Notes under the pieces: generated by a model
What the model saw: the letters and a program-made list of their open reading frames with translations, nothing else
Told to the model about the DNA's origin: nothing
Databases searched by the model: none
NCBI GenBank assembly: GCA_965644295.1
Contig: CBFFRP010000151.1
Span: 1 to 64,000, forward strand
Reading direction: 5' to 3'
DNA: 64,000 nt
Origin: Paraphysomonas bandaiensis
Taxonomy: Eukaryota > Protista > Chrysophyceae
Translations under genes and position numbers: made by a program
Part shown: positions 4,494-50,189 of the stretch, one piece after another
How the letters are laid out: each line of letters opens with the position of its first letter
How positions within the stretch are numbered: the stretch's first letter is position 1

Positions 4494-4498
<5 letters not shown>

Positions 4499-4624
4499 CG
4501 GTAGTCAGCATCTTCTTTTTCGGAAATATATTGAAGCAAAAAGCTTCCATAGTACTGCAGTACAACTACGGCTAGAATACAGATAATTATTGTCTCAATA
4601 TTAGAGGCATCTTCGAACAAAAAT
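4494..4624 (-). mobile_element. 151-bp module/MITE family A, copy 1 (5'-truncated)
   Basis: Reverse complement contains GATGCCTCTAATATTGAGACAATAATTATCTGTATTCTAGCCGTAGTTGTA...GACTACCGATAC, as in the other six copies. Confidence 0.9.
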
Positions 4625-5019
4625 TGAGTATGTATGTATGTATGTGTACGCATATATATAGATCTGTACGTATGTATGTATATAACGCTCTGAAGTGAGT
4701 AAAAGACGATGTTAGATTTTTCACTGACGATGTACTTCTATAGAGGGATTTACATAAGTACATGGAGGTGTATGTAGAGGTACAGTGAGGGTTGTTGGTA
4801 CCTACATGTACATATACAGAATGCAGAGGTACAGAAGTACAGTACGAAGGTACATGACCTCTGTGTGTATGTATGTATGTGTATATGAGTTACATACCGT
4901 ACTGCTTCATATACCACACACAACTCTCAACCTCTTCATCCAATCAAAACAGATTATAGTATAAAGTAGCATTCTCATTGGTGTATATCTCTCTCAATAA
5001 TTATCCACTCCAACCATCT

Positions 5020-5121
5020 GAATGCATTAAGAGAAGAAGATGAATGCATAAAGAGAAGAAGATGAATGCATTAAGAGAAGAAGATGAATGCATTAAGAGA
5101 TGAAGATGAATGCATTAAGAG
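5020..5121. repeat. 22-bp tandem repeat GAATGCATTAAGAGAAGAAGAT, about 4.5 copies
   Basis: Seen directly. Confidence 0.9.
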
Positions 5122-5940
5122 TGAGGAAGGAAAAACTTTTGATTCTCAACATAAGAAATCATGAGATCAGCTTCACGTAAAGCTGCCCTGATCTGTTGGC
5201 ATCTCAGCCTTCGTGCTGCTTGCATGCTGAGCCCAGTGGACCATCCTGCTTATCCTTGACATTATCTGCATTCCCATTTCTGATGACCATCATCAAAGTC
5301 CTCGAGTTGAGTAGAAACACCCTTGAAATGGATTCTGGTGTGAAGTTGTCAGACACCTCTAGACTATGATACACACACTCTGATGATATAATCGACTGAG
5401 TATGATATTTATATGACCAAAACTCTAAATATCCAGGTTTTTGACTGCAGTAAAAAGTAAAAAGCCCTGATAATACCATACCCATTCCGGTGCACGTCCA
5501 GTTCGTAGTGAACTTCAAATCCTGCAGTATCCTGTAAGGCAAGGATCGGTAAGAGCATGATTGCTATTAGGATTCATCTTAATACAAGATAGTATGTGTG
5601 AATTATGATGTTCAATGAAATATATCATGAACTGAATTAATGGTTGTATGTGGAAGATACTTGATCGTCATATCGTCATCGTAATGATCATCATTGTCAG
5701 TAATACTTCTAACTATTCCGTTGTGTATGATAGTTGTGTTCCACATTACTGTGTTCATCACTTTATGCTCTAGTAGTCACAACGTTCTTCTTACTATTTC
5801 TAAGCTAAAATCTGCATTATTGCCAAACTACTTAGAGATAACCTCAACAGTGTGCAAAGATATATAAAAGACAAATCCTTATTATATTACAATACACATA
5901 CTCTTCCTACTTCCTATATTTCCGCTTTCCACTATATCTA

Positions 5941-7626
5941 CTATGGTTCTTCCTCTGGCATATACTTCACAAATACCCACTCAGCTAATCTAAACACATA
6001 TTGCTTTATAGATAGCGGTAGAGTCGTATCTATAGAATGCAGTAGTTTCATAGACATATAAAGTGATGTATTTGTGTGTGTAGAAACTTCAATAATTCCC
6101 ATATGTTGGAATACAGGTAATACGTAGCTTAAGAATACGGTCGGAGGGGACATTAATGGGACTGCTACACGACCTTCTACATAATGCCTGTGAGGATATG
6201 GTGATCCGAGAGCATGTATGACACTATTCGTTACAGCTGCATTAACACTCGGCTGCAATACGCAGAGATAAGATGTCAGGAACAGATTATACGTATAGTG
6301 TAAGAGTAACTCACTGGTAATGGACGCTTCATCTGTTTGTTCTTAGTCCTCTTTCTGGATGCTCGCCTTTGCTTAGCTCGTCTTTCCTCTTGAACTTCTA
6401 TACTCTCTATCTCTAGTGGGGACGTCTCTGAGAAAAAGTGGTTCACTTGACCTACAGGTACCTCCACGAGAGACACCCTAAATTGGACACAAGATGAAAT
6501 AGCTATATGTTGTACTAGGTCCATACTACAACGAGTGCATACACAACAACCATACATGAAACAGGCGATCCCTCCCAGCCATAAAAAGTCAATCACGTTA
6601 GCATATACGCACCGATTATCTCCTAATTGATGAGAAGCCAGTTCGAAAGCTGTCCTGTCAAACGCACACGCTATTCCGCAGCCCATGTGAACCATACTGC
6701 GCATTAAATATTACGATAAGACAAACAAATCGTTATTACTCATACCGGTGTAGATAATTCTCTGCAGTCAAAGATTTGACGAAAACCACTCGACTATTGC
6801 TTGTGTTCATGTATTCCAGACACGCTTGTAGTATGCGTACTGGTCCCTGAAGGCGTTGCTGGTACTGTTCATGCAAATGTACCACATCCAGATCCATCGC
6901 CTGTCCCGTATTCATCTCCTCCGGATGGTCTATCAGCACTGCACCCACTAGGCTCCGACCCTGCCCCGTTTGCAGCTCCTGCACACGGTACATAGCTGTG
7001 GCTATTTGAGCAGGGTCCGTGAGGTCCAGAAGTACCGTCTCAATGCCTAATATACACGGAAGGTAAGAAGACGATGTTGTATACAAGGACGAGCAGGACA
7101 TATGTATACAAATATTAGCACATCTGGAAACCCATACGCAATAACTCAATACACATCACAGTATAGTAGTGACATGAAACTCTTACAGAAGAATACAAAG
7201 CGACCTCCCTCATAGTATGTTTATCTATCTATTGTATCTCTCTCTCTATATATATATGTATGCACGTAAGTATGTATCTCTCTCTCTATACGTATGTATG
7301 TATCATGTAGTATGGCAGTGTATATGTACGTATGTATGTTATGTATGTATACCTTTAACAGATGAGTACATAAGAGACTTCCTCTCTGCTTCAGAACTCA
7401 CACCCACTAAAACAAGACCACCTGCTTCAACTAATTTGAATGCAATTTCTCTACCAGGACCAGATAATGAGGATACTAATATAATACTATGAGACAAGGC
7501 TCTCGAGGAGTATACAGGCATCTCCATAGGGGTTTGAGGGTGACGGGGAATAACCCCCATTGAAGATAATGCAATAATTACAATAAATATTGCAATTAAA
7601 AGTGTATAGATAGAAATATATGTCAT
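5941..7626 (-). CDS. Membrane-anchored atypical short-chain dehydrogenase/reductase-like protein (multi-exon)
   Basis: Exon 1 (7626-7353): TM anchor plus IILVSSLSGPGREIAFKL (degenerate TGxxxGIG). Exon 2 from 7046: VLLDLTDPAQI...SRVVFV. Last exon: VTNSVIHALGSPYPHRHYVEG, like 17b-HSD/RDH C-termini. Middle exon boundaries not resolved. Confidence 0.7.
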
Positions 7627-7866
7627 ACTTGTTGAGTTTAATGAGTGAGTGATATGTATATATAGATGAGACTGTGTCTTCAGGCAGCTGGCTGCATCAT
7701 ACCACTCTACCTATTTTTGCATACTAACTCTAATTTTGGTATATTTTCATATATTTTCATATATTTTTCTAACTTTCTCCATATTTTCCGCTTTTTTATG
7801 TCCTATCTAAATAGTATAGCATACCTACTGCTGTATGTATATACACTGTATATCGAATATACTGTA

Positions 7867-8017
7867 CGTATCGGCATCGTTTGTATATTTTTGTTCCAAG
7901 ATGCCTCTAATATTGAGACAATAATTATCTGTATTCCAGCCGTAGTTGTATTGAAGTAATATAGAGTATTTCTGCTTCAATTTAATCCCGAAAAATATGA
8001 TGCAGACTGCCGACACG
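7867..8017 (+). mobile_element. 151-bp module/MITE family A, copy 2
   Basis: Termini CGTATCGGCA...TGCCGACACG plus the conserved core. Confidence 0.93.
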
Positions 8018-8316
8018 GATGTATGTATATGTATGTATATGCATATCTCCATACATAGAGTCATGTATGTATATGTATGTGTACAGCAGTATATACACAC
8101 ATATATATATACATATACATATACATCCATCCAGCATACTAACTCCACAACACATACATCCATACATCACCATATCTATCCCTCTCTCATTCTCCCACCT
8201 CATCTCACTCACTCTTTCACTCTCTCTCATCCTCTGTATCTCTGTATCTCTATAGACATACATACATACACACATACACACATACACACACATATATACA
8301 CATACATACACACATA

Positions 8317-9255
8317 ATGTCAGATTTATCACTCTCTTTATCACAAATTGAAGAAGAATTAAATACAATCACATCTCTTGCTAATTCAGGTCAATCATTT
8401 AATGAAAATCGACTTGATGTCCTCTTACAGCTAAGAGAGGACAATGAAGAGTATCAGATACGTCTAAAGGGACAACACATGCAATGGATGAAAGATTGGG
8501 GGGATTTCTGTTATCAATGTTTACTTATAATGCGTGGATATATCCCTCATACAATATTTGAATCATCAATTGAAGATTTAGAGAGAGTGTATCCATTACC
8601 ACTTGCAAGAAGACTGTTTCAGAAGCAGTGTCTGTGGTTGGTAAGAGAAGATAAGAGTGAGATAGCAAGAATGCATGAGTCGGTATTATTTAGTCGGTAT
8701 AATCCTGAAGGACATGACTTGGATGTAGTTGAATTGAGTGCATTATATTGCTGTTTACCGGAAAAATTTTCTAATGACAAGAAAGAGAAGTGGCGCGCAC
8801 GTATCGAGGCTCGAGTTAAAAATATGACGCACCGTATGGAGTCAAATATCTTACCGTTGACTGCGTTACGACATGAATGTTATACTGATGTTGAAGGTGC
8901 TTTCTCTGACTTAGAGTCAGTTCACCGAAGGGAAGTTGTGAGCCACGAAAATGGGAGGAGGAAATCTTTTACCGATGTATGCCAGCGTCATTCACTATTG
9001 AGCAATATCAGGGAAGAACGTGATAAAAATGAAAATGCAGACACACTTGAGCAATTGGAAACTGATCCCAGTTCTTTGCCCCTCTCCGGGGACAAGACCA
9101 CGGAGCCCAAGGTGGATATTGCGTCAAGTACCCCTAATGTTAAAAACTCTGTTGACGAATCTCCTGCTTCAACGCCAACTAATAAGAAGAAAGGCTCTAG
9201 AAATTCTACGAGAAGAGAGAAAGTCAAAAGCCAAATCAGAGTAGCTGATATATAG
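8317..9255 (+). CDS. Hypothetical protein, 312 aa, single exon
   Basis: Clean ORF after a CATA/CACA tract; globular core (LWLVRE...LDVVELSALYCCLPEKF...KWR) and low-complexity tail. Confidence 0.8.
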   Translation: MSDLSLSLSQIEEELNTITSLANSGQSFNENRLDVLLQLREDNEEYQIRLKGQHMQWMKDWGDFCYQCLLIMRGYIPHTIFESSIEDLERVYPLPLARRLFQKQCLWLVREDKSEIARMHESVLFSRYNPEGHDLDVVELSALYCCLPEKFSNDKKEKWRARIEARVKNMTHRMESNILPLTALRHECYTDVEGAFSDLESVHRREVVSHENGRRKSFTDVCQRHSLLSNIREERDKNENADTLEQLETDPSSLPLSGDKTTEPKVDIASSTPNVKNSVDESPASTPTNKKKGSRNSTRREKVKSQIRVADI

Positions 9256-9876
9256 TATTTTAGTTATTCTCCACATTAATGAATGATAAATATATCCCGT
9301 TTTTAGCCTAGTAGTTCATTGTATGAAAGTATTACCAGTATCACGTTGATTTATTCAAGAGTTTTGTGACATTATATTTTGCTGAGGCACCGAGTTCGTC
9401 CTAGCTCCATAGATCACTCGTGTCATGTATAGATCAAGCGATTTAGTTTCGATAACTATAATTCATTATCTCTCTTATGGGTTAGTTGAACAATTAAATA
9501 CTCTAGTATCTAGTTTCCTGTTCTGTATCGTATGTATGTAAAAGTATGTATCTTGAGAGGATGGTACCTACTTATTGCTGGAAAATTACAACTTATTATA
9601 CTAGGTACTAGTTATAGTGAATACTACACTTATTGGAAAAGTTAGATTTTTGATTATTAAATATACAACTACAGGACGATATTACTACGACGTCGTACGT
9701 ATAAAGAATGTCCTCTACCGACAAAGGCAATAGTATACTGCTTACGGTCGCTGCAATCCAGATGATAGATCAGCACGAAGAAATAGTAGTTCTGCTGGAT
9801 GGAAAACTACGACAGTATATCTTCTTTCCGTCAGAGGGCTGTTTATATATACATATGCACATACGTGTATTATTTC

Positions 9877-10157
9877 TGCAGTGGCTTCATTCACATGATC
9901 CTCCTTGTCCATGGGATGAAGAGACATTTTGTGCTTCTGCAAGTGGTGGACACTTGGATATTCTGCAGTGGCTTCGTTCACAGGACCCTCCTTGCCCATG
10001 GAATGAGATGACTTACATTGCTGCTGTTTGTACCGGACACTTGGATATTCTGCATTGGCTTCGTTCACAGGACCCTCCTTGTCCATGGGATGAGATGACT
10101 TGCATTGCTGCTGCTGGAGGCGGACACTTGGATATTCTGCATTGGCTTCATTCATAG
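9877..10157 (+). pseudogene. Ankyrin-repeat fragment, PCPWDE-TC-AA-GGHL-LQWLRSQD type (75-bp units)
   Basis: About 3.5 tandem 25-aa repeats ending in a stop; no convincing 5' part. Confidence 0.75.
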
Positions 10158-11017
10158 AATCTTCCACAGTCATGGGTAGGATTGACAATGGGATGTTCTG
10201 AAGTGTGTTTGTTGAACAATATTGTTCCCTATCCCTGCTGTTCATATGTAATATAGGCTTGTATGCGGGATATGTTCATATTTATATGCAGCAACTTAAG
10301 AAATCGACGGTATTACGTATTTATATACTACAATATATGTAGGAAATAGTAGCAGAAGTATGTTGAATTCATGTTTTAAAAATCAGCAACAGAAAAGATA
10401 TGCTTCTTTCCTTACAGCTTTTAATTGCTCACAAACAGCAAACTCAACATTACTGAAATAAATGATCTTACTTAATAATGTCTTTTAGAGTCCTAGTGAT
10501 GAATACGGCTCATGAAAATTCTTTGCAAAGGATATTAACACATTTGCTCGAAGCATAAGTAGCGCTTTCTTTTCGAGAGAAACAGTTAGAAAGTTTCTCA
10601 AGTCTCTCGATTTCACGCTGTATATATTTCAATACACGCTCTACAATCTTCTCTGCGTATGACACATACAAGTCAGCAGAATCATTATTTTCGCCCGCTT
10701 CAGCCATTGAGTTGCAATTACAATACGTAATATTGACTTGAATCCCATAATAGACGACTATTCGAACATGATAAACGAGTGTCAAAAATCAAATAGCGGA
10801 TATACATGAATATTACGTGAAATGTTTATAGTTTATGTTACTGATAATAATTCTTTCATGAAGGTGCGTACATTGTGTAAAACAATGCAAGTTTAAGGTT
10901 TACGTAGTTCGAAGTTGACTTCACCGATGTATCCAAATTTTAAATATGTATTTTTTGAAAAGGCGATGCTACATAATACATAGAAATTACATAACTGACT
11001 TTGTATGAGACAAGAAG

Positions 11018-11090
11018 CACTAGTGAAATAAAAGTAGTTCATTCGACTGCCATATGGACTTTCATATGAACTGCCTCCATTTCACTAGTG
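11018..11090. mobile_element. Miniature CACTA (EnSpm-type) element, 73 bp
   Basis: 25-bp imperfect TIR CACTAGTGAAAT...ATTTCACTAGTG with identical 3-bp flanks AAG (11015-17 and 11091-93). Confidence 0.8.
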
Positions 11091-11141
11091 AAGTAATCAT
11101 AAAAATGAGGCGTTATATAGTTAATGCCTGATTCTAAATAG

Positions 11142-11236
11142 CAGGGCCTGGTAACCATTAATGGCCTATTTATGGGTGCCCAGTCTCCCCGGTAGTAATA
11201 GTGGCATTACCGATTATTCGAGTAGGGTAGGCCCTG
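11142..11236. mobile_element. Possible degenerate hAT-type MITE
   Basis: Termini CAGGGCCT...AGGCCCTG; 8-bp flanks CTAAATAG and CCACATAG match 6/8. Confidence 0.4.
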
Positions 11237-12112
11237 CCACATAGTAATATACGTGAACGCTGCAGGAGCTATAGAGGGAAAGTACACTCATGCAACAGAG
11301 TTATCGTTACTAGTTCATGATCATCTGTGGTGTGAGCTTTATTTTGCATGGAAACCAATTGGAAGGGATGACCTGGTCTGAATAAAGACCGCGGGCCTCA
11401 TAGATACTAAAGCAAGATATGGTTAAGATTGCGTTACCGTTACATGTGTACATATATACTGTGTACTGCAGTACACTATGGATATATACTCCAGTACGCT
11501 ATGGATATATACTGCAGTACGCTATACATATAGCAGGCAGTGTATATGAACACACATATATACAGCAGTGTATTATCACTTTTACAACGTACAAATTAAA
11601 AAAAAATGAAATTACAAACAGGTTTTTATATTAAACTTGACGAAATTACAATTTTTAGAAATTGTCCAATAAAATAAATATTAGAATTCTTTTTTTTTTC
11701 ACAACAAAAATTTTGTATAGATATAATACGGTATATTCCGTTATGTATTTCACGTCAGGTATTTAGAGAATTGAAAATTTCAATCTTTCCTATCCAATCA
11801 TTATATATTTAATTGGTTAAAACTGATTTTCAGTTTCCACTATCGTTTCAAGATATGGGTAAAAAGGGAAGTCGATATGAAGAAAGTGAGTACGATGAAA
11901 GTACCATATGTGTTCGATGGAATCCCTTCTACTACATACATAATTCTACACCACCACTTCATGTGTATGTGTGTGTATGTATATACATACATATTGATGA
12001 CATGACCATAATTCGAGTCATTCTATATATAAAATTCATTAATAGAAATAGATAGAAGAACATACTATTTCAGTAATATTGATTAATAGAAGTGTTGATA
12101 GAGATTGATCAG

Positions 12113-14479
12113 ATGGGACAAGGGAAAAGTTTAATAGGAAAGACATCATCTGAGTGTGTTATACATGAATCTCCATTAAATAAAGATAAAGATGAATATG
12201 CTCATCTTGGAACTGTTTCTGTTAAGCTTTCATGGTTGACAGCTAATGTCCGATACACTCCTGAACAACAGAATGATATTATAGTGACTGGAAAAGGTGG
12301 AATCTTTCATGGGACCTCTGCTGCTGCTCTTGCTGTGATGAAAGGTGAGATAGAAGGACTATAGGGAGATAGATGTGTGTATATGGGACTATAGGGAGAT
12401 GTATGTGTGTGTATGGGGCTATAGGGAGATGTATGTGTTAGGAGCTATAGGGAGATGTATGTGTGTGTATGGGGCTATAGGGAGATGTATGTGTGTGTAT
12501 GGGGCTATAGGGAGATGTATGTGTGTATTTTAAATGTATGTGAGATACATATTGGGGCTATATATATTTATATGTATCTCGATAGAGAAATAGTGTGTCA
12601 TGAATAAATTGGTCTACAAATGGCTTACGTGTGTGGTGCAGAGTTGGCCAAAGCGAAATTGTTTCCGAAAGAGATTCCTCTGTTGGATTCGAGGGCGCAT
12701 CAGCTTTTGATTACATACTCAAACGGATGGCACGCCATATCCTCCCCTGAAATTTTTTCACGTCATTCTGGCACGTGTATTATAATAGGTGATCGTGTGA
12801 ATCCCGGTAAGCCTTATCCAATCAAACTTGGAGACTGCTTTCGCTTGGGATCTGTGGGGGTAGTTGTTTCGGAAGTGAAAACCGATAAAGGTGTCGAGCA
12901 GAGACTTGACACCAATAGACTCCAGTATTTGCGAGAAGAAGCATTGGCTTTTGAAGGAGATCAGGATGAGGCCGCATTGGCTGCTGAGGAGGACTCTGAC
13001 AAGAAGAGCCGGGACGAGGACGGAAACACGCAGCGAGATACGGTTGCTCCCTTTTGTTACATGTGTTACGAGACTCACGACACCCCAGAGGACCACCTTG
13101 TGGCTCCATGTGACTGCAAAGGTGACACGCGGTATCTTCATGTTCAGTGTCTGCAGAAATGGTACCAAAGCTCAGTATGTGGCTCCCGAGCGCTTGTAAT
13201 CCGTACTACTGGTAACGGGGCACCTGCGTGTAAAATATGCGGTGCTGCGTACAAAACCGCTTTTCGATCTAATGGTGTCAAAACTAGCCTTCTTGAGGTG
13301 GATCATCCAGGGCCCTATATTTCTCTTGTTGTTGTTACGCGACACGATACCTCTCCTGGCCTTTTTAACACGAAGTTCCGGCTCAATTTCGGACCTGGTT
13401 ACAACGCAACTGAGCAGCAGTTGCATGAAGATCCAGCCCCTAGTGAATTGACGATTGGGCGATCAAGTGTGTGTAATATGGTTCTCGACTACCGTACTGT
13501 GTCGACTGTTCACGCAAAACTCAGCTACCGCAACGGTCAGTTCTATGTGTCTGATGCAAGGTCAAGCAATGGTACGATGGTTTATCTCCAAGGTCCCCTC
13601 CCACTTCAGAATAATCAGACTGTGCGTTTGCGCATGGGTCGTTCGACCCTGGCTATTCAAGCTCGCCGTTCGTTTTCCGCCTCCCTTAAGGGAACTCTTC
13701 AGCGAGCACCCAACCGTGTCCCCTGCACTGCATCTCTAAATGAGCTGCAGGAGGTAATGGCCTTAGCACCCCCGTATATACCGAAGTCCATTAGGAATGT
13801 TCCAGATGAAGGGTCGCCGGCGCCAGATGGTATGCGCCGCGCTTTATCTCGCGGGAACTCTCACTTGTCCGAGGGTGCTGTCGAGTCTACTAGCGTGACT
13901 GCAGCGGCCAATCCAGGAGGCATATCTGGATCAATAGCGGAGACTTCTTTGGATCGTGGAGGATCAGTCGCGCTGCCGTCAGAAGGTATCGACGGGGCTC
14001 TTATATTAGGCGGAGACATGAGAAGATCTCGTCCCAACAGTGCAAATACTGAGACCAGGGCAGATAAGGAGAGGGGTGGTGTAGCTGTGGTTCAGATGCT
14101 TTCAGACGCATCTGACGAGAAGGACAGCAGTAGCAAGCTCAGCTCTCCTAACCGATCTCCAAGAGGGGACAGAGAGAGACGCAAAAATGACACCCCGCAA
14201 CAGTCACCATATAAAGCAGAGGGAGCGCCAAGCAATACAATAGCAGAGGGATTCCGGTCCCTAGACAGTTCGGGTCCTTGTAGTCCTTTGGATGACGTGG
14301 AGGAGGGACCGGGTGTGTTGAGTAGTCCGAAAGCTAGACAGGGGGTTTGGAGAGATGATAAAAATGAAGAAGAAAATGAATGTGGTAAGGGAGGTCTAGG
14401 AAGTGGGGGCGTCGTCTCCAGTTTTTCGAAGGCAATGGTAAATGACATAATGGCATCTGCTACTTCAGATAGAAGATAA
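12113..14479 (+). CDS. FHA - RING-CH(RINGv) - FHA putative E3 ubiquitin ligase; join(12113..12344,12642..14479)
   Basis: RINGv CYMC...APCDCKGDTRYLHVQCLQKW...CKIC; FHA motifs IGRSS..SxxHA..SSNGT and IKLGDCFRLG; phase-1 GT-AG intron joins the frames; N-terminus MGQGKS. Confidence 0.9.
12355..12530. repeat. About 30-bp intronic tandem repeat (GGGCTATAGGGAGATGTATGTGTGTGTAT), about 6 copies
   Basis: Seen directly inside intron 12345-12641. Confidence 0.9.
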
Positions 14480-15348: not shown

Positions 15349-17000
15349 TAACAGAAGTTGACATTATTTGCTAAGGTTTACTATTCTCAACTGATAAGAT
15401 GAAATTATAAACATTACATGATAAAGAACCTAAGTTGTGTTCGATGTGTTCAACACCATTCATTTACTACTATAGTGTACAAACCACCCACTCAGTGATC
15501 GTATCCTGTATAGTCATCCACTTCTACTTCAGTTTCATACTACATAATATAATGTACTAATTACATATATATCTTTCGATCCTTGCATCTCACATAATAC
15601 TGCACTCAATTGCAAGTATATAGAATCTTCAGATCTCAACACTCCCCCTCAATTGAGTGTTGTACTTATGACGCCTCCCAGCTATTGAATGCCTGAGATA
15701 AAAAAATTCTTGACAGTAAAATAGACTCATCTCTAAGTCTAAACCTCTGTCTAAAAAACTCAGTACCTACTTGCGCCTTCTTTTATCCCTTGGTCCCTCA
15801 TTAATCACTTCAGTGGAACTCTTAACTTTCTCTCCAAGATTTCTCTTTCTCTGCTCCATATATGATAAACCAACCAATGACTTTGTATAAATATCTGCTG
15901 CTTGTTGCGATGTATGCACATGCACTAACTTAATCGTATTGAACTGATTGGGATCCACGTGCTCTCTCACCATGTGATACTTAATCTCAATGTGCTTCGA
16001 CTTCTTGTGAAACACTGGGTTTTCGGCCAAATCCTGGGCACTCTGACTGTCGATGAAGAATGGTGTGGGTTTGATGAGCCTCAACTTAATCTCACCCGTC
16101 ACCCCCCGAACCCATAGCACTTCTTGGAGACCCGAGTAAATACACTGATACTCAGACTGCATGCTTGACGTTGCCACTGTCGTCTGCAGTTTGGACTGCC
16201 AGACTATAGGCCCTCCCGCTGCAAACCCAACGTACCCCGACGTGGACTTCCTGGAGAGCTGATCTCCCGCCCAATCCGCGTCAGTAAACATATGGAAGTC
16301 GAACCGTCTACTCCCATATTGAATCCCTTTGTCAATAGAACCACGAATATATTGCCATACATGTGTTAATAGCTTGCATACTTCAATATTCACCTTATTA
16401 CTGAACCGAGACAGTACTCCCACTGCATAGGCAATATCCGGCCTCGTGTTCATCGATAGATATAGTAATGCACCTATCAGCGGCCGATATGGGAAGTTAT
16501 CTACTATAAGCTGTTCCTCCTCGGTATGCTCATGCCGCGCCCCTTTTGCCACTAAATCCATTGCTTCCGCCGGTAGAGGACTCTTCCGTACCTTTCGCGG
16601 TGACCCAAGATACTTTTCAAACTTTTCTAAGATCTTAGCCGCATATACTGATTGGTCAAGACGAATATACTCTGGCGTTCTTGTGACTCGAACATTCAGA
16701 AAATGTTCCATCTCGCCCATATCCTTCATATCAAACCGGGCACACAGTTGAGCTTTAATATCCTTCACTATGTTGACATCACGACCTAACACTAGGATAT
16801 CATCCACATATATCGTTAATAATATCAATTCATCGCCCTTATACTGATAATACAAACACGGGTCTAATACACATGGTTTAAAATGCATAGATCGTATGAA
16901 TTTATCCAATGTTTTCCACCACGACCGCGGGGAACTCCGAAGCCCGTATAACGACTTCTTCACGACGATCATGGTGGGGGTACTCAGTTTGTACTTTGCC
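15349..17000 (-). mobile_element. 5'-truncated Ty1/Copia LTR retrotransposon: RT-RNaseH, PPT (15642-15650) and 3' LTR (15349-15641)
   Basis: PPT GAGGGGGAG immediately precedes TGTTGAGATCTG; the LTR is homologous to 22452-22744; pol ORF lies upstream. Confidence 0.93.
15767..16972 (-). CDS. Copia pol fragment (reverse transcriptase + RNase H)
   Basis: KSLYGLRSSPR, YVDDIL, TRPDIAYAV, DADWAG..RKSTSG, KHIEIKYH, ADIYTK motifs. Confidence 0.95.
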   Translation of the reverse strand: MIVVKKSLYGLRSSPRSWWKTLDKFIRSMHFKPCVLDPCLYYQYKGDELILLTIYVDDILVLGRDVNIVKDIKAQLCARFDMKDMGEMEHFLNVRVTRTPEYIRLDQSVYAAKILEKFEKYLGSPRKVRKSPLPAEAMDLVAKGARHEHTEEEQLIVDNFPYRPLIGALLYLSMNTRPDIAYAVGVLSRFSNKVNIEVCKLLTHVWQYIRGSIDKGIQYGSRRFDFHMFTDADWAGDQLSRKSTSGYVGFAAGGPIVWQSKLQTTVATSSMQSEYQCIYSGLQEVLWVRGVTGEIKLRLIKPTPFFIDSQSAQDLAENPVFHKKSKHIEIKYHMVREHVDPNQFNTIKLVHVHTSQQAADIYTKSLVGLSYMEQRKRNLGEKVKSSTEVINEGPRDKRRRK

Positions 17001-19776: not shown

Positions 19777-20547
19777 TTAATACCATTGACTTATAAATTC
19801 ACCAAATCTGGATGCACGACTGATTCCAAATATGTTTCCAGCGATATACATGTACCAGGACGGCAAGAAATGAAGATCTTCAAAGGTACTTGTCAATATT
19901 CCATTTGCAATGACTTCAGATTGTAGACAATTCAAACCAAAATACTTTTGAGGTTGTGTTTCTCTTTCTACTGATACAACAGAACATACTTGTTTATTAT
20001 ATGAATAAACAGTATCTCCATATTGTAATGATACAGCAGTTTGATATCCATTCGATGTAACAACTAAATGATTATCAGTAAGACGTAATGTATGAATATG
20101 TTGATGACATTGAACAGTAAGGATGACACCAATCGATTGTATGATATGAGGAATATAACACTCTGATTGTTTGTCTTGTATGAGATCATTCATAGATAAC
20201 TGTGTATGATTATATTCAATCAAAGTATTTTCATGATAACATTTTTTTATATTACTTTCACATGTATATGAATGTAACTGACATTGTAATGTATGACACC
20301 AAGTGATACATTCATCTTCCATATCATCATCATCACTACATTGAAATTCATAACATGCTATCGATGTGATGTTGGTTATACAGTTCTCACTAATATAACG
20401 TCCATCTAAAAGGGTTTTACATGAGAGTAAAGCATCGTTACAGTCATGGATGGAACATCCAGTACATTTACATGTACCATCATCATCATGTTCACTATGT
20501 GAAAGTATGTATTGTAGTAGAAGAATGAATAGATGGAAAGATTTCAT
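19777..20547 (-). CDS. Secreted Cys-rich protein with C-terminal Hint (Hedgehog/Hog-type autoprocessing) domain
   Basis: Signal peptide; 12 Cys in aa 26-96; Hint start CYHENTLI (C103), block B LRLTDNHLV, LQYGDTV, VVSV, VIANGILTSTF; short amphipathic tail. Confidence 0.85.
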   Translation of the reverse strand: MKSFHLFILLLQYILSHSEHDDDGTCKCTGCSIHDCNDALLSCKTLLDGRYISENCITNITSIACYEFQCSDDDDMEDECITWCHTLQCQLHSYTCESNIKKCYHENTLIEYNHTQLSMNDLIQDKQSECYIPHIIQSIGVILTVQCHQHIHTLRLTDNHLVVTSNGYQTAVSLQYGDTVYSYNKQVCSVVSVERETQPQKYFGLNCLQSEVIANGILTSTFEDLHFLPSWYMYIAGNIFGISRASRFGEFISQWY

Positions 20548-20700: not shown

Positions 20701-20830
20701 TTCGGAAATAAATTGAAGCAAATATTCTCTATGTTACTGCAATGCAACTACGGCTGGAATATACATAATTATTGTCTCAATATTACAGGCATCTTGGAAC
20801 AAAAATATACGAAAATATACGAAGGATGCC
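20701..20830 (-). mobile_element. 151-bp module/MITE family A, copy 3 (ends eroded)
   Basis: Reverse complement has GGCATCC...AATATTGAGACAATAATTAT...AGCCGTAGTTG...TTCCGAA. Confidence 0.9.
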
Positions 20831-24882: not shown

Positions 24883-25413
24883 TTATGGATGTATTGCTTC
24901 GCCCACCCGGGATATCGGAAGTACTAGATGCAGCCCCGATAACAGTATTGGGCCCCACATGGGGGTGTCCAGGGTCAGCAGTCCTGGACACTGGGAGTTC
25001 TGAAAAGACAATGCCACCAGCTGTCGATACACAAGTCTCTCATTGCCGGGAAGATTAAATGTGTTTATGAAATATGCTGCTGATTCTAGTGGGTAGAAAG
25101 CCCCCTTCAATACGCTGCCCCCTCCGTCCACATCTCTGATGTAGTTACAAGTACGCTGCGGGAAAAGCCTCGCAAATCTGCTGCGCGCACTGCTGCGTGA
25201 ATGGACAAGATTTCTACTGGATGGGAACGCCTCAAACAGAAAATCAAAAAAGTCAGAGCTGTGCACCACGCGCATGTCCTGAACGTCGAAGCAACGCAAC
25301 TGCCGCTCGAACTGTGGGGTGTTAAAAGATACAGTCACCATCTCCGACTGGGAGATGGTCTCCGGCAGCAAGGCGAGTCTTCTTGCCGGAGTTTCTTCCA
25401 TCAAGCTCAACAA
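24883..25413 (-). CDS. 176-aa ORF inside the Sola-like element (5' exon or accessory ORF)
   Basis: GC-richer coding-like ORF starting 190 bp inside the right TIR. Confidence 0.4.
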   Translation of the reverse strand: MLSLMEETPARRLALLPETISQSEMVTVSFNTPQFERQLRCFDVQDMRVVHSSDFFDFLFEAFPSSRNLVHSRSSARSRFARLFPQRTCNYIRDVDGGGSVLKGAFYPLESAAYFINTFNLPGNERLVYRQLVALSFQNSQCPGLLTLDTPMWGPILLSGLHLVLPISRVGEAIHP

Positions 25414-25615: not shown

Positions 25616-25766
25616 CGTATCTGCATCCTTTGTATATTTTTGTTCCAAGTTGCCTCTAATATTGAGACAATAATTATATGTATACCAGCCGTAGTTGTAT
25701 GTAGGTAATATAGAAGATTTTTGCTTCAATTTATTTCCGAAAAAGAAGATGCTAACTGCCCATACG
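25616..25766 (+). mobile_element. 151-bp module/MITE family A, copy 4
   Basis: Termini CGTATCTGCA...TGCCCATACG plus the conserved core. Confidence 0.93.
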
Positions 25767-30096: not shown

Positions 30097-30247
30097 CGTA
30101 TCGGCATCCTTTGTATATTTTTGTTTAAATATGCCTCTAATATTGAGACAATAATTATGTGTATTTCAGCCGTAGTTGTATGTATGTAGTATAGACAATT
30201 GTTGCTTCAATTTATTCCCGAAAAATAAGATGGTGACTGCCTATACA
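30097..30247 (+). mobile_element. 151-bp module/MITE family A, copy 5
   Basis: Termini CGTATCGGCA...TGCCTATAC plus the conserved core. Confidence 0.93.
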
Positions 30248-39665: not shown

Positions 39666-39695
<30 letters not shown>

Positions 39696-41186: not shown

Positions 41187-41950
41187 CTTTTGTCACTTGA
41201 TATATTCTTTTAGAGCGATATTTCGCTAGTTTGGTGTAACTAATTGGTGTTTGGTTCGCCTCTATTGAAGGGAAACGTGGAGTATAGATTATAGATTCGA
41301 GAAAACATGTATAGACGGAGTTTAAGAAACTATAGTACGTTGATGTGCATTTAGGCTGACTTTGAACAACTCTGTGTAGTAGCTAGTAGCTAGGTATCAG
41401 CTAATTCTCTAATATAACCTTTTTCGTGATTGAACACAAGAACAAGAATAGGATGGCATGCTACTGTTATATGTACTAATATACTAGAAAAAGAGTATGA
41501 TGAAAACTATGACTGAAGATATTCATTAAATTTTTAGAGTATTTTTCCCATCTATTAGATGTGTATTATCGAATTATCCAATGATACTGTCGAACTTTAC
41601 AAAATTAGCCATGAAGTTATTGCACTTTGAATCTAAGGGAGTAGCAGAAAAGATCCAGATGGCAGGATGTGACACTCCTACCTCCTACTAAAGTTAAATG
41701 GTCTTGATGAGCCAGGACAGGATGTATGATGCAAACATCATACATCCTACTTATACACGCAAATTTTAAGCATGCATACTGCACTTGAACTTAATGTATT
41801 TTCTTCATCAACTACGATGAAAATAAATTTTCATAGTCAGTTATGACTAGTCTGATACACCGATATTGAATACGGTGCGTTAATGCACAGGGATTCGTAG
41901 TTAGACTGATACCACTAATTAGTGATAGTAAGATGCAATACAATTATTGG

Positions 41951-42478
41951 AGCTTATCTAAGCCTATGTAAGCCTATCTAAGTGTATCTAAGTCTATGTA
42001 AGCCTATCTAAGTGTATCTAAGTCTATGTAAGCCTATCTAAGTGTATCTAAGTCTATGTAAGCCTATGTAAGTGTATGTAAGCCTATCTAAGCAAGTGTA
42101 TCTAAGTCTATGTAAGCCTATCTAAGTGTATCTAAGTGTATCTAAGTCTATGTAAGCCTATGTAAGTCTATGTAAGCCTATGTAAGTCTATGTAAGCCTA
42201 TGTAAGTCTATGTAAGCCTATGTAAGTCTATCTAAGTGTGTCTAAGTCTATGTAAGCCTATGTAAGTCTATGTAAGTCTATGTAAGTCTATGTAAGCCTA
42301 TGTAAGTCTATGTAAGCCTATGTAAGTCTAAGTAAGCCTATGTAAGCCTATGTAAGTCTATGTAAGCCTATGGAAGTCTATCTAAGTGTGTCTAAGTCTA
42401 TGTAAGCCTATGTAAGTCTATGTAAGCCTATGTAAGTCTATGTAAGTCTATGGAAGTCTATCTAAGTGTGTCTAAGTC
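41951..42478. repeat. 10-bp minisatellite (AAGTCTATGT / AAGCCTATGT / AAGTGTATCT variants), about 52 units
   Basis: Seen directly. Confidence 0.95.
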
Positions 42479-43170
42479 GTGCTCTTGCCATTTATTATTA
42501 CTATGTACAAGCATCAAGAGCCCATATGTTTGATAGGGCTATACATGCTACAGGGATCATAATCTCAGAGGAGTGAATCAAGTGAGAGGGGATAAGATGG
42601 TGTAGATGTGAACTATATATACATGTGATGAAGTAATGAGGGGCTCCATGCGGTCTATGCATGTATGTGTGTGTGGGTGTTCTGTATGTATGTGTGTGTA
42701 TCTGCTGCGGTATTATTCATATGATCATACGAGTCTCTCTCCTCATGAGGAGCACACACCACTATACACCACTATGACCACACACGGTTGATAGTCCTCA
42801 CTCGTGTCTGTGAGTAGAGGCAGCAGCAGAGCCTCTGAATCATGTACTCATATATGCATATATCCACATCACATTCACTTCGAAGTGACTCAGAGGTATA
42901 CCCCCATATACGCACACGTATACCTATGTATACCATATACACAGTATACAGAGAATACCGGTAGGTATATGTACGTATGTATGTAAGTAGGTACAGGTAG
43001 CTAGGTACAGGTAGATATTCATGATTGGTCATCATTTATTTCATCGAAAAGTTATTGTTTTTTTATTGAAAAGTCACTTTTTTTCACTTTTTAACTAAAA
43101 AAACGATGATTTTTCAATGAAAAAAAACAATGAACAAGTCAATAAAATCGATATGCACTGCTTTGTCCAG

Positions 43171-43341
43171 GGGGTGGTTGTGCATATCGATTTCATCGAT
43201 TTGTTCATCGTTTATTTCATTGAAAAGTCATCGATTTTTCAGTGAAAAGTGAAAAAAAGTGACTTTTTAATGAAAAATCGATGACTTTTCAATGAAGTAA
43301 ACGATGAACAAATCGATGAAATCGATATGCACAACCACCCC
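43171..43341. mobile_element. Foldback MITE with ~71-bp TIRs and CAG target duplication (PIF/Harbinger-like), with an older inverted copy at ~43025-43160
   Basis: GGGGTGGTTGTGCATATCGATTTCATCG...CGATGAAATCGATATGCACAACCACCCC; CAG at 43168-70 and 43342-44. Confidence 0.88.
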
Positions 43342-43424
43342 CAGTACTAACTATACTATACTATCGTACACTACTATACTACGTACTACTTTGTACACTC
43401 TCCTCTCCACCCCATATCACAATA

Positions 43425-43788
43425 TACATACATACATACATACATACATACATACATACATACATACATACATACATACATACATACATACATACATACA
43501 TACATACATACATACATACATACATACATACATACATACATACATACATACATACATACATACATACATACATACATACATACATACATACATACATACA
43601 TACATACATACATACATACATACATACATACATACATACATACATACATACATACATACATACATACATACATACATACATACATACATACATACATACA
43701 TACATACATACATACATACATACATACATACATACATACATACATACATACATACATACATACATACATACATACATACATACATACA

Positions 43789-43818
<30 letters not shown>
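43425..43818. repeat. (CATA)n microsatellite, about 98 units
   Basis: Seen directly. Confidence 0.98.
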
Positions 43819-43819
<1 letters not shown>

Positions 43820-43861
43820 TCCTACATACATACATACATACACCATACAGCAGTATATATA

Positions 43862-44014
43862 CGTATCGACATCCTTTGAATATTTTTGTTTAAAGATGCC
43901 TCTAATATTGAGACAATAATTATCTGTATTCTAGCCGTAGTTGTATTGCAGTAATATAGAAGAAATTTTGCTTCAATTTATTTCCGAAAAAGAAGATGCT
44001 GACTACCCGATACA
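43862..44014 (+). mobile_element. 151-bp module/MITE family A, copy 6 (153 bp)
   Basis: Termini CGTATCGACA...TACCCGATAC plus the conserved core. Confidence 0.93.
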
Positions 44015-44086
44015 CATATGCATATGAATCAATTCACATTTATAAGAAGCGCCATACCACACACTTATAGATACCATACAACAACA

Positions 44087-46614
44087 ATGAATTCAATACA
44101 AGATATATGTTATCAATATCTTCATGGACTTGATACAGATATACTTCATTATATTATTGATCTCATTGAATCATATGAAGATACGGATATCACTGAATTA
44201 CAAACTATGATCAGTGAGTTTCTTACTAGCACTGATTATATAAATACAGATGATGAAGCATTACAATATACAAAAAAACTATTAAATGATTGTAATCTTA
44301 AGAATTCATTCAATACGAAACATGACCATGAAAATACACAAGTATTATCGGATGAAATTAAAAAAAAATTAATTAAGATCGATACTATACATACACAACA
44401 TCACACTGTGTTTAATGCAACATCATCAACTTCATCATCATTACCATCAACTTCATCATCATTACCATCAACTTCATCATCATTACCATCAACTTCATCA
44501 TCATTACCATCTAAAGTTTCAATACCATTTATAGAAAAATGTCATGAAAAAAAAGAAAATGAAAAGAAACATAAGAGTAATAAACATATTCCTCCTGTGG
44601 ATAAGGTGAAAGGACAAGTTCAAGAGATTGATAATGAATTAGAAGCTGCTCAAATTGCTGCTGCAATTGCTCGTTCACGAGAGGGGGCATATAATGGTGC
44701 CTTGGAAGCATCTGGATTCACCCTTGCGAACCCAGGTGGAGGACCTCCATTGCTAGAGAATGCATCTTGTACACTTCTACGTGGCCGTCGGTATGCACTT
44801 ATTGGGAGAAATGGAAAGGGAAAGACGACTTTGTTAAGGGCTTTGGCAGCACGTCAAGTGGGAGACATTCCAGTCAATGTCACGGTCCATTATGTTTCAC
44901 AGGAAGTTAAACTGACCCCTACCACACGAGAGTGGACACCCGTACAGTGTGTGCTTGAGGCTCATGTCGAGCGACGCTTATTGTTATCGGAGTCACAGCA
45001 ATTGGAGGAGAAAAGTATAAAGGAGGGATTAACTGAATCTGAAAGAGAACGACAGTGTGAAGTAATGGAGCAACTGGAGCTCATCGATTCTGATTCCGCG
45101 GAAAGGCGAGCTGAAGAGCTGCTGAAAAACTTGGGTTTCTCTGAAGAGATGCGCGCCCGCCCATTAAAGGAGCTCTCCGGAGGGTGGAGAGTTCGAGCCT
45201 CATTAGCAGCTGCGATTTTTGCCGAACCAGATTTATTGCTTCTGGATGGTAAGTTCTGATACAACCTTTGTTACGGTGTCGCGGTGTGTACATCCTAGCC
45301 TATGTGATTATCTCTTTGGAAAGATAGTAACTTGTTTTTATAGAGCCTACCAATCACCTTTCTATTTTGGCCGTCCTCTGGTTAGCTCGTGAGTTATCTA
45401 CTTCCGATGTGTGGAAGGATCGGATAGTTGTGGTGGTGTCTCATGATAGGTATTTCATTGATGAGGTGTGTACTGATACGCTTCATATTTCTGGAGTAGC
45501 CAAGAGGCTCACTCAAACTAGAGGGAATTACTCTGCCTGGTCTTCTAGGAGGAAAGAACAGCAGCTTGCCTTTTCGCGAGAAGCTGCAGGACGTGAGGCC
45601 GAGATTGAGCGGTTGAAGGAATACGCTGGTCACGGATTTCGGTATGGGGGATCGTCTTCGCAGATTAACAAGATGCAAATGAAAGCCAAACAAGCCGAGA
45701 AGCTCGAGTCGGAGGCGGCTAATCAGGCAGAAGAGCTGGCAGCATTGCAGGAAGATGTTGAACTGCCTTTAACTCTCCATGCTGGAGGAGAGGTGGAAGG
45801 ATTCCTAGTCCAAATGCTTGGGGTTGGTTTCGGATATCCTGGACATGCTAAATTGTTTTCCAATGCAGACTTCAGTGTCACAAGTAAATCGCGTATAGTG
45901 ATTCTTGGAGAGAATGGAAATGGCAAAACTACACTTGTGAAACTCATGTTAGGCGAACTATTACCTACAGAGGGCGAGATCAAGAGAGACCCTAGAGGTC
46001 GTTTCGCCCTTGTAAACCAGCACCACGCAGACCAGATCCCCCTCGATATGACGCCATTACAGTTCATGTTATCGAAGTTTCCTGGGGATGGAAGTTATGA
46101 TCATACCCTAAAGTTGAGGTCTCAACTAGCCAGTTGTGGAGTTACTGGTGGCGATCCAGATCTTCAAAACACCCCATCTCTTGCGCTCTCTGGAGGTAAG
46201 AGTGGTGTGTTATCTACGAATGCTTTGTAGTATCGCCAATGTGATAGATTTCTGATGTACTGATTTTTTGACGTGTGTAGGTCAGCGTTCACGAGTGGCA
46301 CTCGCTGCAGTTTCTTACACGAGGCCACACGTTCTTGTGCTTGACGGTAGGTGTATGCAAATGGTAGCGTGCTCTGTTGATTTGCGCAATTTTTAGAGCC
46401 CACTAACAACCTGGATTTGGAATCTGTGGCAGCCTTGGCGCAGTCCGTTAAAAATTTCGAAGGGGCGGTTGTTGTAGTATCACACGATCATTACTTTGTA
46501 TCAGAAGTGGCTGATGAAGCTTGGGTTGTTAATGGGGGCACTGTAACGCGAATTTCGTCGTTTGAGGCTTATCGGAACAAGCAACTTGCAAAGTTGAACA
46601 AAAAATCAAAATAG
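44087..46614 (+). CDS. ABCF3: ABC-F family translation factor (GCN20/ABCF3-like); join(44087..45248,45344..46195,46281..46346,46397..46614)
   Basis: Two NBDs (GRNGKGKTT/LSGGW/LLDEPTNHL and GENGNGKTT/LSGGQR/VLDEPTNNLD), no TM segments, ABCF3-like helical N-terminus. Confidence 0.9.
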
Positions 46615-47424
46615 TTGATTGTAGTCACTTATGTAAGCGATATTAAAGTAAATGATTTAGCAACTTAATAGCTTAAAATACCTCTTTAACTAATAGTTTT
46701 TTGGGAAATAGCAACATATGTTCTATGTGCACTTGTGCATTGAAGCTTTACGTTATAAGACTGCATGAATTTACAGCGCACACTGAATGCTGAATTTATC
46801 CTATATAGTATCGAAAAAGTGCTTTATCTCTCACCTCTCACTATGATAGAAGGAGCTATGATATTTATATAGTAACTATAAAACTATAATTGTGTTAGGG
46901 AAAAGTCTCTAATACGGTATTTAATTATTGATGCAAACCTCAGCATGTACATATTTTTTTATGTTCGTGAATACGCTACCTATGCAATGAATGAATATAA
47001 CTATTATAACATTGTAACTCACTATGCAAAGTCTGTGACTGTACGCGATATGCTTGTATACTATTAGTTTTCTAGTACCTTTAGCTTTTAGCAATAATAT
47101 TAGGTCTTATTTTTTATTGTAGAGTCTCGCTCTAAAAGGTTGAATAATCATTATAGAATCTAACCCTCAACAAAGTCGGACTCTGGTGTTCTGGGGGATA
47201 AGTACCAGAGATATTTCTATGGGGCACGACGTGAGCCGCATATATAGTCAGCGGATAATATCTGCCCACTCATAGGACTAATTACTAATGCTTGTGTCAT
47301 GTGTAGACGTCTTTGGGCCTTGACGAATAAACAGGCATCCAGGAATGGGCCCACATTAAGGGTATCCGTGGTATTTGGCTGCTTGCTGAAGTCAAGCATC
47401 CGAGTTGTTTATCTTAAGCACTCT

Positions 47425-47595
47425 AAAATCCTGAAGTCAGCAGATGTCAGGTATATCACCTTTCTGCTTGCTCACTGCGTCTACTTTGAGTGATAGAAGA
47501 GCGATAAAGTGGTTGCACCTTCGTACTTGCGGTGACGCACAAACAGCTTTCGTAGCGTTAAATAGTAGGATATTAGAGTGAAGTGTTAGTTAACA
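47425..47595. repeat. Dispersed repeat shared with 17700-17852
   Basis: See the partner copy. Confidence 0.75.
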
Positions 47596-47718
47596 CTATC
47601 AAAACTAACAGAAGATTAACTAGAACAAATATTTTGAAGATAATTCTACTAAGTAAAATACTACCAAACTATACGATGTGATGAAAAACACACAATCTAA
47701 CTACTAGATGCATGATCA

Positions 47719-49251
47719 TTATACTTCAACAGTTTTGCTAGTTGAGGATTTCTGCTGCACATCGCTCCGTGGCGGTGCTACATGGTGTGATGAGTCGGGA
47801 AGAATTGGATCTCTATCCGACACCATGTTGGGCTTTGTAGTTTTAAACGCAAAAAGCACCATCACCAGGACAGCAACCACTGATATTACAATAATAGAAA
47901 GAAATACTGCATATACAGTGCCAGATCCAAGAGCACCCTCCTCACCATTATCACTATAGTTCGCACCATCTTCCGGCTCAGACACCTCGAACAGAGCAGA
48001 CATGCCCGCCATTCGGTGGCTCTGATGTCCACTGACCAGTGGCCAGATTCCAATCGACTCTGGGATCATATCTACTGTTGCATACCCTGGAGAAGAAAAT
48101 GCCACATAGTCCGAGTAATGTCCTGTGGAATCAGTTACTGGGTTGTTGGTCCACTCCACACGCTCTGTCTGTACATAGCTGTCGTCAGAGGCAGAGAGAA
48201 TATGCCAGCGCACCCTAGACTGGGCTGGGAAAGTTAGACCCATAGATGGGCCAAGGTTACCGAACATATAGCCGTTTATAGTTTTCCGGTAGGAGTTCGA
48301 TATTAGATCCTCGTCTTGGTACAAGTTGTCATCATCACCCTCCAGAGCTTTTAAGCTTTCGATCCAGAGCCTTATGATAGACATAACAAAATACCATCAA
48401 TTTATTGGAGTTGCAGAGATAAAATAAGTGAAAAGTGCACGATGCTTACCAGCTCTGTGACTCATCAAACTCGCTCAGCATAAGAACATGCTCGTGATCT
48501 ACATCACAAGGTCGGGCGGCACTTCGTTGTGAGTTCGAGGTTATAGCATTCGCGCGGACCACAACGATGGAACCTAAGAGGCCAGTATGCGAATCTCTGC
48601 CTAAGCTAGAGTCCGAATGGTACATCCATACCCTTGAGGAGAAAGACTGTCCATCCGGTCCAGAATCAGACAGAGCTAACCATGTATAAGTCGTTTCTTC
48701 ACCGTAGCCAATCTTATCGTCGAAACTCTACAGGCAAATCACCACAATTGCGGTACAGAAAACATGCATACCTGAGTATAGAAGAGACCATGAGGGCGTA
48801 TGTTGTAGTACTGACTTGAACAATTATTGTAGAAATGCACTTTAACTGTGTCCCCAACAACAGCTATAAGCAAACATAAGCTTCATACATATATATATAA
48901 TACTGATATATAACCTCTTATTGTTGGTCCTGTAACACCATTAACAGATGAATGAGTAAGTGGTATTGACCATTCACAACGATTCTTCTTCTTATTATAT
49001 TGATACTGTCGATAGACGGCTTTCTTAAATACTTTCCCAATATTCTTATCACTAGCTGTAAGTATCGCTTCCGCTTCATCTTCATACATGCCTGTAAGAT
49101 CCATTGTACTATTAAATGACATTGGTGCATAATTCCAATTAATATGATCAGCAGATATACAGTAATGACGTGTAGTTGTATGGTATGTGTATTGCTTATG
49201 ACATGATCCATATACAGTGATTAAACTAATCAAAGATATGAATATATGCAT
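47719..49251 (-). CDS. Two-domain ceruloplasmin/hephaestin-like cupredoxin membrane protein, 4 exons (49251-48915, 48863-48772, 48727-48450, 48370-47719)
   Basis: RHYCISADHINWNYAP, IGKVFKKAVYRQY, GPTIRAVVGD, WMYHS...TGLLGSIVV, INGYMFGNL, TVDMIP..GIWPL..HQSHRMAGM; signal peptide and C-terminal TM. Confidence 0.85.
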
Positions 49252-50038
49252 ATCTGTATATTGTTATTAAATTGAGAAGATAAGAATTGAATTGAAATCA
49301 ATTTAATTGTAATGAAAGTAATGAACTTAATGTATATATATATGAATAGATGAGTATATACATACATACATTCATACATATATATATATGCTTTAACGGC
49401 ATTTTTATATATAAGGGAAGAAATTTTTTTTTTTACAACAAGGAATTTTGTAATAGAATTGTAATTTTGTATAGATGTATACTGTATAGCGTTTTAATAG
49501 AGGGGGAAAAAGAGACAATTTTTTCATGAAAATTGTTTTCTTGTTGTATGTAATTATGTAGAACGGTATAATGTATATCTAGATATTGAAATTTTTGTAG
49601 GGGAATATTAAAAATATTAAAATTTTGGTGAGGGAATATACGCTTCGTCATAGGGGAAAAAATGGGGTTTTATAGATGTAATTTTATGGGGCAAATTTTC
49701 ATAAAAAATTATTATGTATATATTGCTACTTGTACACTATAAAGGGACAGGAATACATTGTACTGTACATAGTACCAGGCTATCGGTATACAGCAGGCTA
49801 TCGGTATACACAGTAGTGCAGTGGACGCTGTATGGTAGATACTCTTGTTATAGTGGACTGGAATACATTGTAGTCATGAGGTATATCCAAGAAATTCTTG
49901 GTGTTTTATATGACATTCCTCGCATATTTCTTTACCTTCTTCAGGGGCTGTATATCACTGTATACAACAGTCCAAAGTAGAAGATACAGCAGTATGTTTC
50001 TTAGGATAGGGATATATACACACCCATCTAGTAGTATA

Positions 50039-50189
50039 CGTATCGCCTTCCTTTGTATATTTTTGTTCCAATATGCCTCAAATATTGAGACAATAATTAT
50101 ATGTATTCAAGCCGTAGTTGTATGTAGGTAATATAGAAGATTTTTGCGTCAATTTATTTCCGAAAAATAAGATGCTGACTGCCGATACT
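50039..50189 (+). mobile_element. 151-bp module/MITE family A, copy 7
   Basis: Termini CGTATCGCCT...TGCCGATAC plus the conserved core. Confidence 0.93.

Follow-up and report, generated by a model that had tools for sequence, protein, structure and literature searches.

The stretch analysed here, hereafter the window, comprises 64,000 nucleotides (positions 1 to 64,000 of the forward strand of contig CBFFRP010000151.1) from a eukaryotic assembly of 62.5 Mb in 669 contigs, that of Paraphysomonas bandaiensis, a little-studied stramenopile-type flagellate. Genes in the window contain spliceosomal GT..AG introns, and the Meckelin ciliary gene is present. The window also holds seven copies (c1 to c7) of a short non-coding repeat, a MITE (miniature inverted-repeat transposable element) whose family comprises approximately 960 core-bearing copies in the genome. 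The copies of this family lie overwhelmingly at the 5' ends of genes and in random orientation, a distribution that probably reflects integration into open promoter DNA. The copies in the window are as follows.

4494..4624, minus strand: c1, 5'-truncated, without approximately the first 20 nt (consensus positions 21-150)
7867..8017, plus strand: c2, full length, 151 bp, between divergent genes
20701..20830, minus strand: c3, both ends truncated (aligning to consensus positions 14-126)
25616..25766, plus strand: c4, full length, 151 bp
30097..30247, plus strand: c5, full length, 151 bp
43862..44014, plus strand: c6, 153 bp, ending 4 bp before the in-frame ATG (44018) of an ABCF open reading frame (ORF)
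50039..50189, plus strand: c7, full length, 151 bp, in a divergent intergenic region

An earlier note on this DNA had reported seven copies at these places and on these strands, and a motif search together with an alignment of the copies confirmed them. The alignment yielded a unit of approximately 151 bp bounded by CGTATCGGCA and TGCCGATACG, which form the 10-bp terminal inverted repeat (TIR) that had been described. Four of the five full-length copies (c2, c4, c5, and c7) are exactly 151 bp long, as had also been stated, and c6 is 153 bp. Two inner motifs are indeed identical throughout the window: there are exactly seven occurrences of the 20-mer AATATTGAGACAATAATTAT and seven of the 11-mer AGCCGTAGTTG, at a constant spacing of 9 nt in 7/7 copies, compared with 0.00 and 0.60 matches, respectively, expected from shuffles. 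The earlier note read the element as a candidate domesticated, orientation-specific promoter or transcription-factor-binding module, with motifs kept by selection, which drives a same-strand gene 70-300 bp downstream. It named random orientation relative to genes and uniform conservation across columns as the outcomes that would speak against this reading.

As such a module would require, four of the seven copies (c2, c3, c6, and c7) have a same-strand start codon downstream. However, only c3 and c6 are directed toward an adjacent start, c3 lying 154 bp upstream of the minus-strand ATG at 20547. Copies c2 and c7 lie between divergent genes, so that either orientation would point at a start: c2 has a minus-strand ORF starting at 7626 on one side, 241 bp away, and the plus-strand ATG at 8317 on the other, at 300 bp, and c7 is flanked by a minus-strand gene (covered by RNA contigs at 47646-49210) and a large plus-strand gene starting after ~50734. 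The remaining two are directed away from the neighbouring start: c4 has a weak-scoring minus-strand ORF (24883-25413) beginning ~200 bp away, and c5 is located 450 bp upstream of the start of an FG-GAP gene (29647, minus strand). This split of two toward, two away, and two between divergent genes argues against a directional promoter. It also does not agree with the statement that five copies point at a start codon, because c4 and c5 are directed away and c1 faces only a minisatellite ORF. The further claim that no copy lies in a 3' region fails at c1 as well, since the nearest real gene, according to ORF and codon-score calls, faces this copy with its 3' end. The 'GAF' start that had been placed below c1 (apparently ORF 1340-4198, minus strand) was discarded as a translated minisatellite without a Pfam match. 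A search for contigs encoding the FG-GAP protein, as orthologous or allelic loci for the c5 region, found no record.

Simple repeats are prominent around these copies. The 27-bp minisatellite TAACATAACATGCATATCATCCATATA occupies window positions 1-4205, where c1 abuts it; it consists of ~156 copies with a 97% match and a GC skew of about -0.73, and is open in both strands, which produces artefactual ORFs (973 and 952 aa). Several of the copies, namely c1, c2, c3, and c6, are bordered by long (CATA)n/(TATG)n arrays. At c1, a (TATGTG)n/(CATA)n array stands in place of the missing end, and a (CATA)n array at 43424-43818 precedes c6.

When the assembly was searched with the core 20-mer (Y at the polymorphic site, at most three mismatches), 991 matches were obtained against 31 for the reversed control, which corresponds to the ~960 copies given above. 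A first-look genome search had returned 899 candidates, and a 31-nt 5' block and a 30-nt 3' block gave 666 and 556 matches, respectively, with at most three mismatches; in all genome searches, the two strands were balanced among the matches. For the analysis of structure and position, 90 genome loci of ~3 kb were sampled and combined with the window, which provided 95 distinct copies, each flanked by 900 bp or more. The element has a 5' end CGTATCGGCATCC... and a 3' end ...GACTGCCGATACG, and most sampled copies carry the TIRs (5' CGTATCGGCA, with the reverse complement of this sequence on the 3' side). Among 32 full-length copies, 26 are exactly 151 bp long, and 21 are bordered directly outside the TIRs by a 2-bp target-site duplication (TSD), compared with 0-8/32 in shifted controls. 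The duplicated dinucleotides are AT (8), TA (4), GT (2), AC (2), TC (2), CA (2), and AA (1). Three pairs of copies are 100% identical, although their flanks are only 22-30% identical, which is the chance level. Because these identical copies reside at unrelated loci, the family has moved recently, whereas the mean pairwise divergence among copies (11.7%) indicates that older copies exist too. The element is a bona fide MITE, i.e. a non-autonomous cut-and-paste element with no coding capacity and a 2-bp TSD.

Other identities were considered for the element. A small RNA gene or a short interspersed nuclear element (SINE) was ruled out, because searches against Rfam and with ARAGORN (tRNA) gave no match and the element strand has no stable fold (z = +1.1). 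A Tc1/mariner (Stowaway-type) origin was rejected on the grounds that the TSD is variable, with TA in only 4 of the 21 matched TSDs. Two metagenome scans for copies in other organisms returned zero and six hits, the six being chance 21-mer matches in AT-rich contigs; in the literature, we found no paper on transposons of Par. bandaiensis. A deletion variant was also observed, in which copies end with ...AAGATGC|ATACG and have lost 9 bp (TGACTGCCG) from the 3' TIR region; it is present at several unrelated loci (L035, L051, L054, L055, and L057). In addition, some copies were multiplied not by transposition but by segmental or tandem duplication of the host locus (flank identity 0.69-0.98), as in L009, L011, and L013 (G000:C483, C180, and C124) and in L068/L069 (G000:C41:20063 and 22273).

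Genes in the flanks were called by ORF and codon score, after tuning of the caller on the window. Under strict calls (ORFs of at least 150 aa, 84 de-clustered loci, segmental duplicates removed), 70 of the gene ends facing the element are 5' ends and 4 are 3' ends (p = 1e-16). Under looser calls on all 95 copies, the numbers are 105 and 12 (p = 1e-19), and where genes were called on both sides, 27 arrangements are divergent, 8 tandem, and 1 convergent. A predicted 5' ATG lies within 500 bp of 65/95 copies (median 231 bp), and none of the 95 copies overlaps a called ORF. Pfam domains were detected in only 2 of the 10 flanking ORFs checked, so that the reality of these ORFs rests on their length (205-476 aa in a 38% GC genome). 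Only ~52% of the intergenic DNA of the window is 5'-proximal, and its three convergent intervals measure 1.1-1.5 kb, one of them holding a different repeat family of ~430 bp. Convergent intergenic room is therefore present, and space alone does not explain the 5' bias. The tie to gene starts proposed in the earlier note thus extends genome-wide and is far stronger than the window had shown (70 of 74 facing ends). The (CATA)n arrays were considered as the true target and rejected, because an array occurs within 150 bp of only 13/95 copies and the association is largely local to the window.

Both the youngest copies and the spacing between copies show the same placement at a finer scale. Every member of the identical pairs (6/6) has a gene 5' end at a distance of 4-613 bp, and both orientations are represented. 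Furthermore, nine adjacent pairs less than 400 bp apart are found among the 95 copies, whereas approximately one is expected from an estimate based on genome-wide density. At the six junctions examined, the copies are separated by 2-34 bp and are arranged head to head, tail to tail, or in tandem. In one case (L050 1334-1637, G000:C218:165923-166226), two copies stand tail to tail with only CG between them, and in another (L046 1066-1544, G000:C151:96405-96883), three copies fit into 480 bp and are separated by 23 and 5 bp. The abutting copies suggest that insertions concentrate at a very narrow hot spot or occur close to existing copies (self-proximal insertion).

The orientation of the element relative to genes is random, which is the first of the two outcomes named above. 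With strict calls, the nearest 5'-facing gene is on the downstream side in 30 copies and on the upstream side in 27 (p = 0.79); looser calls give 44 and 34, in the same order (p = 0.31). The distances to the ATG are also similar on both sides (311 and 280 bp, p = 0.43). A promoter that acts on the same-strand gene downstream is difficult to reconcile with these figures.

Nor are the two inner motifs a fixed property of the family. The exact 20-mer occurs 127 times in the genome among the ~960 copies, and the genome consensus carries C at a site of the 20-mer where all window copies carry T. Among 58 copies from outside the window, the T form of the 20-mer was found in 12, the C form in 14, and the exact 11-mer in 35; the least biased sample has the exact 11-mer in 13/30 copies. 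In several copies, the CpG of the 11-mer has become TG. To guard against ascertainment bias, column conservation was determined by scoring each column only in copies that had been selected via another part of the element. The mean non-consensus rate was 8.7%, much of which is contributed by 11 hypervariable, subfamily-diagnostic columns; outside these columns, the decay is 5.6% per site. Against this background, the 20-mer shows 4.4% (p = 0.09), the 11-mer 6.2% (p = 0.46), and the TIRs 5.0-5.4%. The least variable 20-nt segments are located at ~122-145, outside both motifs, and no column block was significantly protected in this test. Column conservation is therefore near uniform, which is the second of the named outcomes, and the claim that the interior has been spared while the TIRs eroded does not hold genome-wide: outside the 11 diagnostic columns, decay is alike in the motifs, in the TIRs, and in the remainder of the element. 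The appearance of eroded TIRs and a spared interior arises mostly from truncated copies and subfamily sites.

The identity of the motifs in the window is a modest small-sample outlier and not a property of the family. Random sets of six copies have on average 94.9 invariant columns, compared with 96 for the six scorable window copies. A local subfamily or local hopping, which might have accounted for the shared T form, is not supported beyond two pairs: window copies are no closer to one another than random copies (0.121 versus 0.117, p = 0.65); only c4-c7 and c1-c6 are reciprocal nearest pairs among them.

RNA data were available as assembled contigs of public runs over 43825-49800, and such contigs show neither transcript starts nor levels. 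For the ABCF gene, which contains three GT..AG introns, the contigs begin at 44482-44585, i.e. ~470 bp past c6 and not at the ATG at 44018, although contigs cannot fix starts. They also show the minus-strand gene next to c7, and they do not cover any single-copy intergenic DNA in 43825-49800. Summed depth over the MITE was ~1,700 in RNA run X1 and ~133,000 in the DNA-like run X18, and the depth of neighbouring genes was 270-500 and ~82 in these two runs, respectively. As a rough measure, the RNA-to-DNA ratio of contig depth is ~0.013 over the element versus 3-6 for neighbouring genes, which is a further point against a domesticated promoter. These data suggest that the element is poorly represented in RNA and, at c6, is situated upstream of the transcript contigs.

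The likely explanation for these findings is that the element represents a recently active, promoter-targeting MITE family that integrates into open promoter DNA in either orientation. A putative transposase would prefer DNA that is open and probably depleted of nucleosomes immediately upstream of genes, most of all where two genes are transcribed divergently, and would insert the element in either orientation; inserted copies would then decay roughly uniformly. We infer that the 5' bias is due to target choice at integration and not to later selection or function: the location of identical pairs at 5' ends, the stacking of copies, the uniform decay, and the persistence of truncated copies all favour target choice. 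Thus, the earlier note correctly recognized a MITE at gene starts, but the lack of an orientation bias and a decay that is nearly uniform contradict its selected, orientation-specific promoter or transcription-factor-binding module. The best fit is provided by the fallback that the note had named, a preference of insertions for open chromatin.

Several points weigh against promoter-targeted integration or limit the evidence for it. Fast selection against insertions elsewhere is inseparable from target choice, as the pattern is read from fixed copies and not from de novo insertions. The gene calls are crude, the flanks extend only ~1.4 kb, and predicted ATGs stand in place of annotation or mapped transcription starts. 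The sampled copies represent only ~10% of the family, with 95 copies at 84 independent loci behind the position statistics. Neither an autonomous partner nor a transposase turned up in the 90 sampled genome loci, where every TIR match falls on a MITE copy, and the metagenome scans gave only the chance 21-mer matches. In addition, block 43-62 is slightly less variable than the background (4.4% versus 5.6%, p = 0.09), and the seven window copies form a mild outlier, since an invariant run of at least 20 nt occurs in only 2.6% of random seven-copy genome draws. The latter figure, together with the identity of the motifs in 7/7 window copies, also counts in favour of a domesticated promoter.

A variant of the favoured explanation, to which we assign only a small probability, is that the transposase is tethered to a promoter-bound factor or to a particular nucleosome state of promoters, or that co-option has since turned many copies into regulatory or nucleosome-organising DNA that works in either orientation. 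If this is true, co-opted copies would rewire several hundred promoters in this protist. Co-option may also be formulated as a full alternative, in which the element is an orientation-independent enhancer, boundary, or nucleosome-positioning DNA that has been retained at hundreds of mostly bidirectional promoters. The extreme restriction to 5' regions and divergent promoters, the very uniform length (151 bp in 26/32 full-length copies), and the slightly lower variability of block 43-62 are compatible with this alternative. However, none of the column blocks shows significant protection, promoters retain truncated copies (c1, c3, and others), and identical, newly inserted copies are already located there. 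The pile-up of copies 2-34 bp apart in every relative orientation also fits a hot spot better than a dosage-sensitive module. We therefore consider co-option, too, to be unlikely.

Somewhat less probable still is random integration followed by purifying selection, through which only promoter-proximal copies would be tolerated in a compact genome. The genome is gene-dense, and the absence of copies overlapping a called ORF is what such selection predicts. Nevertheless, convergent or 3' intervals of 1.1-1.5 kb accommodate the other repeat family (>3,200 candidates), yet 3'-facing placements of the MITE account for only 4/74. Promoter insertions are, moreover, usually not the least harmful ones, and the stacking at 2-34 bp and the promoter location of 100% identical copies point to target choice. 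The domesticated, orientation-specific promoter is very improbable, considering the rarity of the exact motifs among the genomic copies, a consensus that differs from the 20-mer at one base, motif decay at close to the background rate with the most conserved segments elsewhere, and random orientation.

Superfamilies that generate a 2-bp target duplication include Tc1/mariner (TA) and, in Repbase summaries, CMC-Mirage and ISL2EU. The element described here shares the 2-bp TSD and short TIRs with these superfamilies, but its TIR starts with CG and not with CACTA or CCC, and the TSD is TA in only 4/21 cases, unlike that of Tc1/mariner. The cut-and-paste P element and maize Mu target promoters or open chromatin. 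Together with Hermes (hAT), they display the same bias to 5' nucleosome-free DNA regardless of orientation, as well as recurring insertion hot spots; they have, however, TSDs of 8-9 bp and known transposases, in contrast to the 2-bp TSD and the targeting deduced from fixed copies in the present family. The part of PMC7534453 that cites Gangadharan 2010 (PMC3009821) describes Hermes insertions as favouring nucleosome-free promoter regions.

Rice mPing and the Stowaway elements of potato and carrot are likewise small, non-coding, TIR-bounded elements of high copy number with a burst or subfamily structure. The 5' bias of the present family (~90-95% of facing gene ends) and its preference for divergent promoters look stronger than is usual for plant MITEs. 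The TSD also differs, being TA in Stowaway and TAA/TTA in Tourist/mPing but 2 bp and variable here, as does the host, a stramenopile-type flagellate and not a plant. The 5' placement itself is common to both: Stowaway MITEs and mPing are enriched upstream of transcription starts and depleted in gene bodies (PMC6881990). Promoters exapted from transposable elements resemble the present case in that a transposable element copy resides in promoter DNA and could supply binding sites; however, the signs of exaptation, namely orientation bias and motif-specific constraint, were not found here.

A directional promoter domesticated wholesale from a transposon family would be a rare case, and the evidence does not support it. 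The family is instead a candidate system for the study of promoter-targeted integration and a likely source of promoter variation between strains. It also offers a practical aid to annotation, because a copy flags a nearby gene start, often that of a divergent pair, with a 5'-end specificity of ~90-95%. When motifs seem invariant among a few local copies, they should be checked across the whole genome.

Other repeats and sequence differences were observed in the window. A minus-strand ORF at 15767-16972 with a Ty1/copia-type reverse transcriptase domain (RVT_2, E = 3e-29) represents a retrotransposon fragment among the genes. The ~430-bp repeat mentioned above is located at 47160-47600, in a convergent (3'-3') interval, and belongs to a different family, for which a first look at the genome returned >3,200 candidates (74-86% identity). 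Its summed depth in RNA contigs reaches ~82,000, compared with ~500 for the neighbouring gene, and the repeat is possibly a SINE-like or other non-autonomous element that is transcribed. Finally, the DNA-like run X18 shows single-base differences from the assembly over 43973-49567 at roughly single-copy depth, with the variant at site 44279 accounting for approximately half of the summed depth; these differences may represent allelic (diploid) variation or a close strain.

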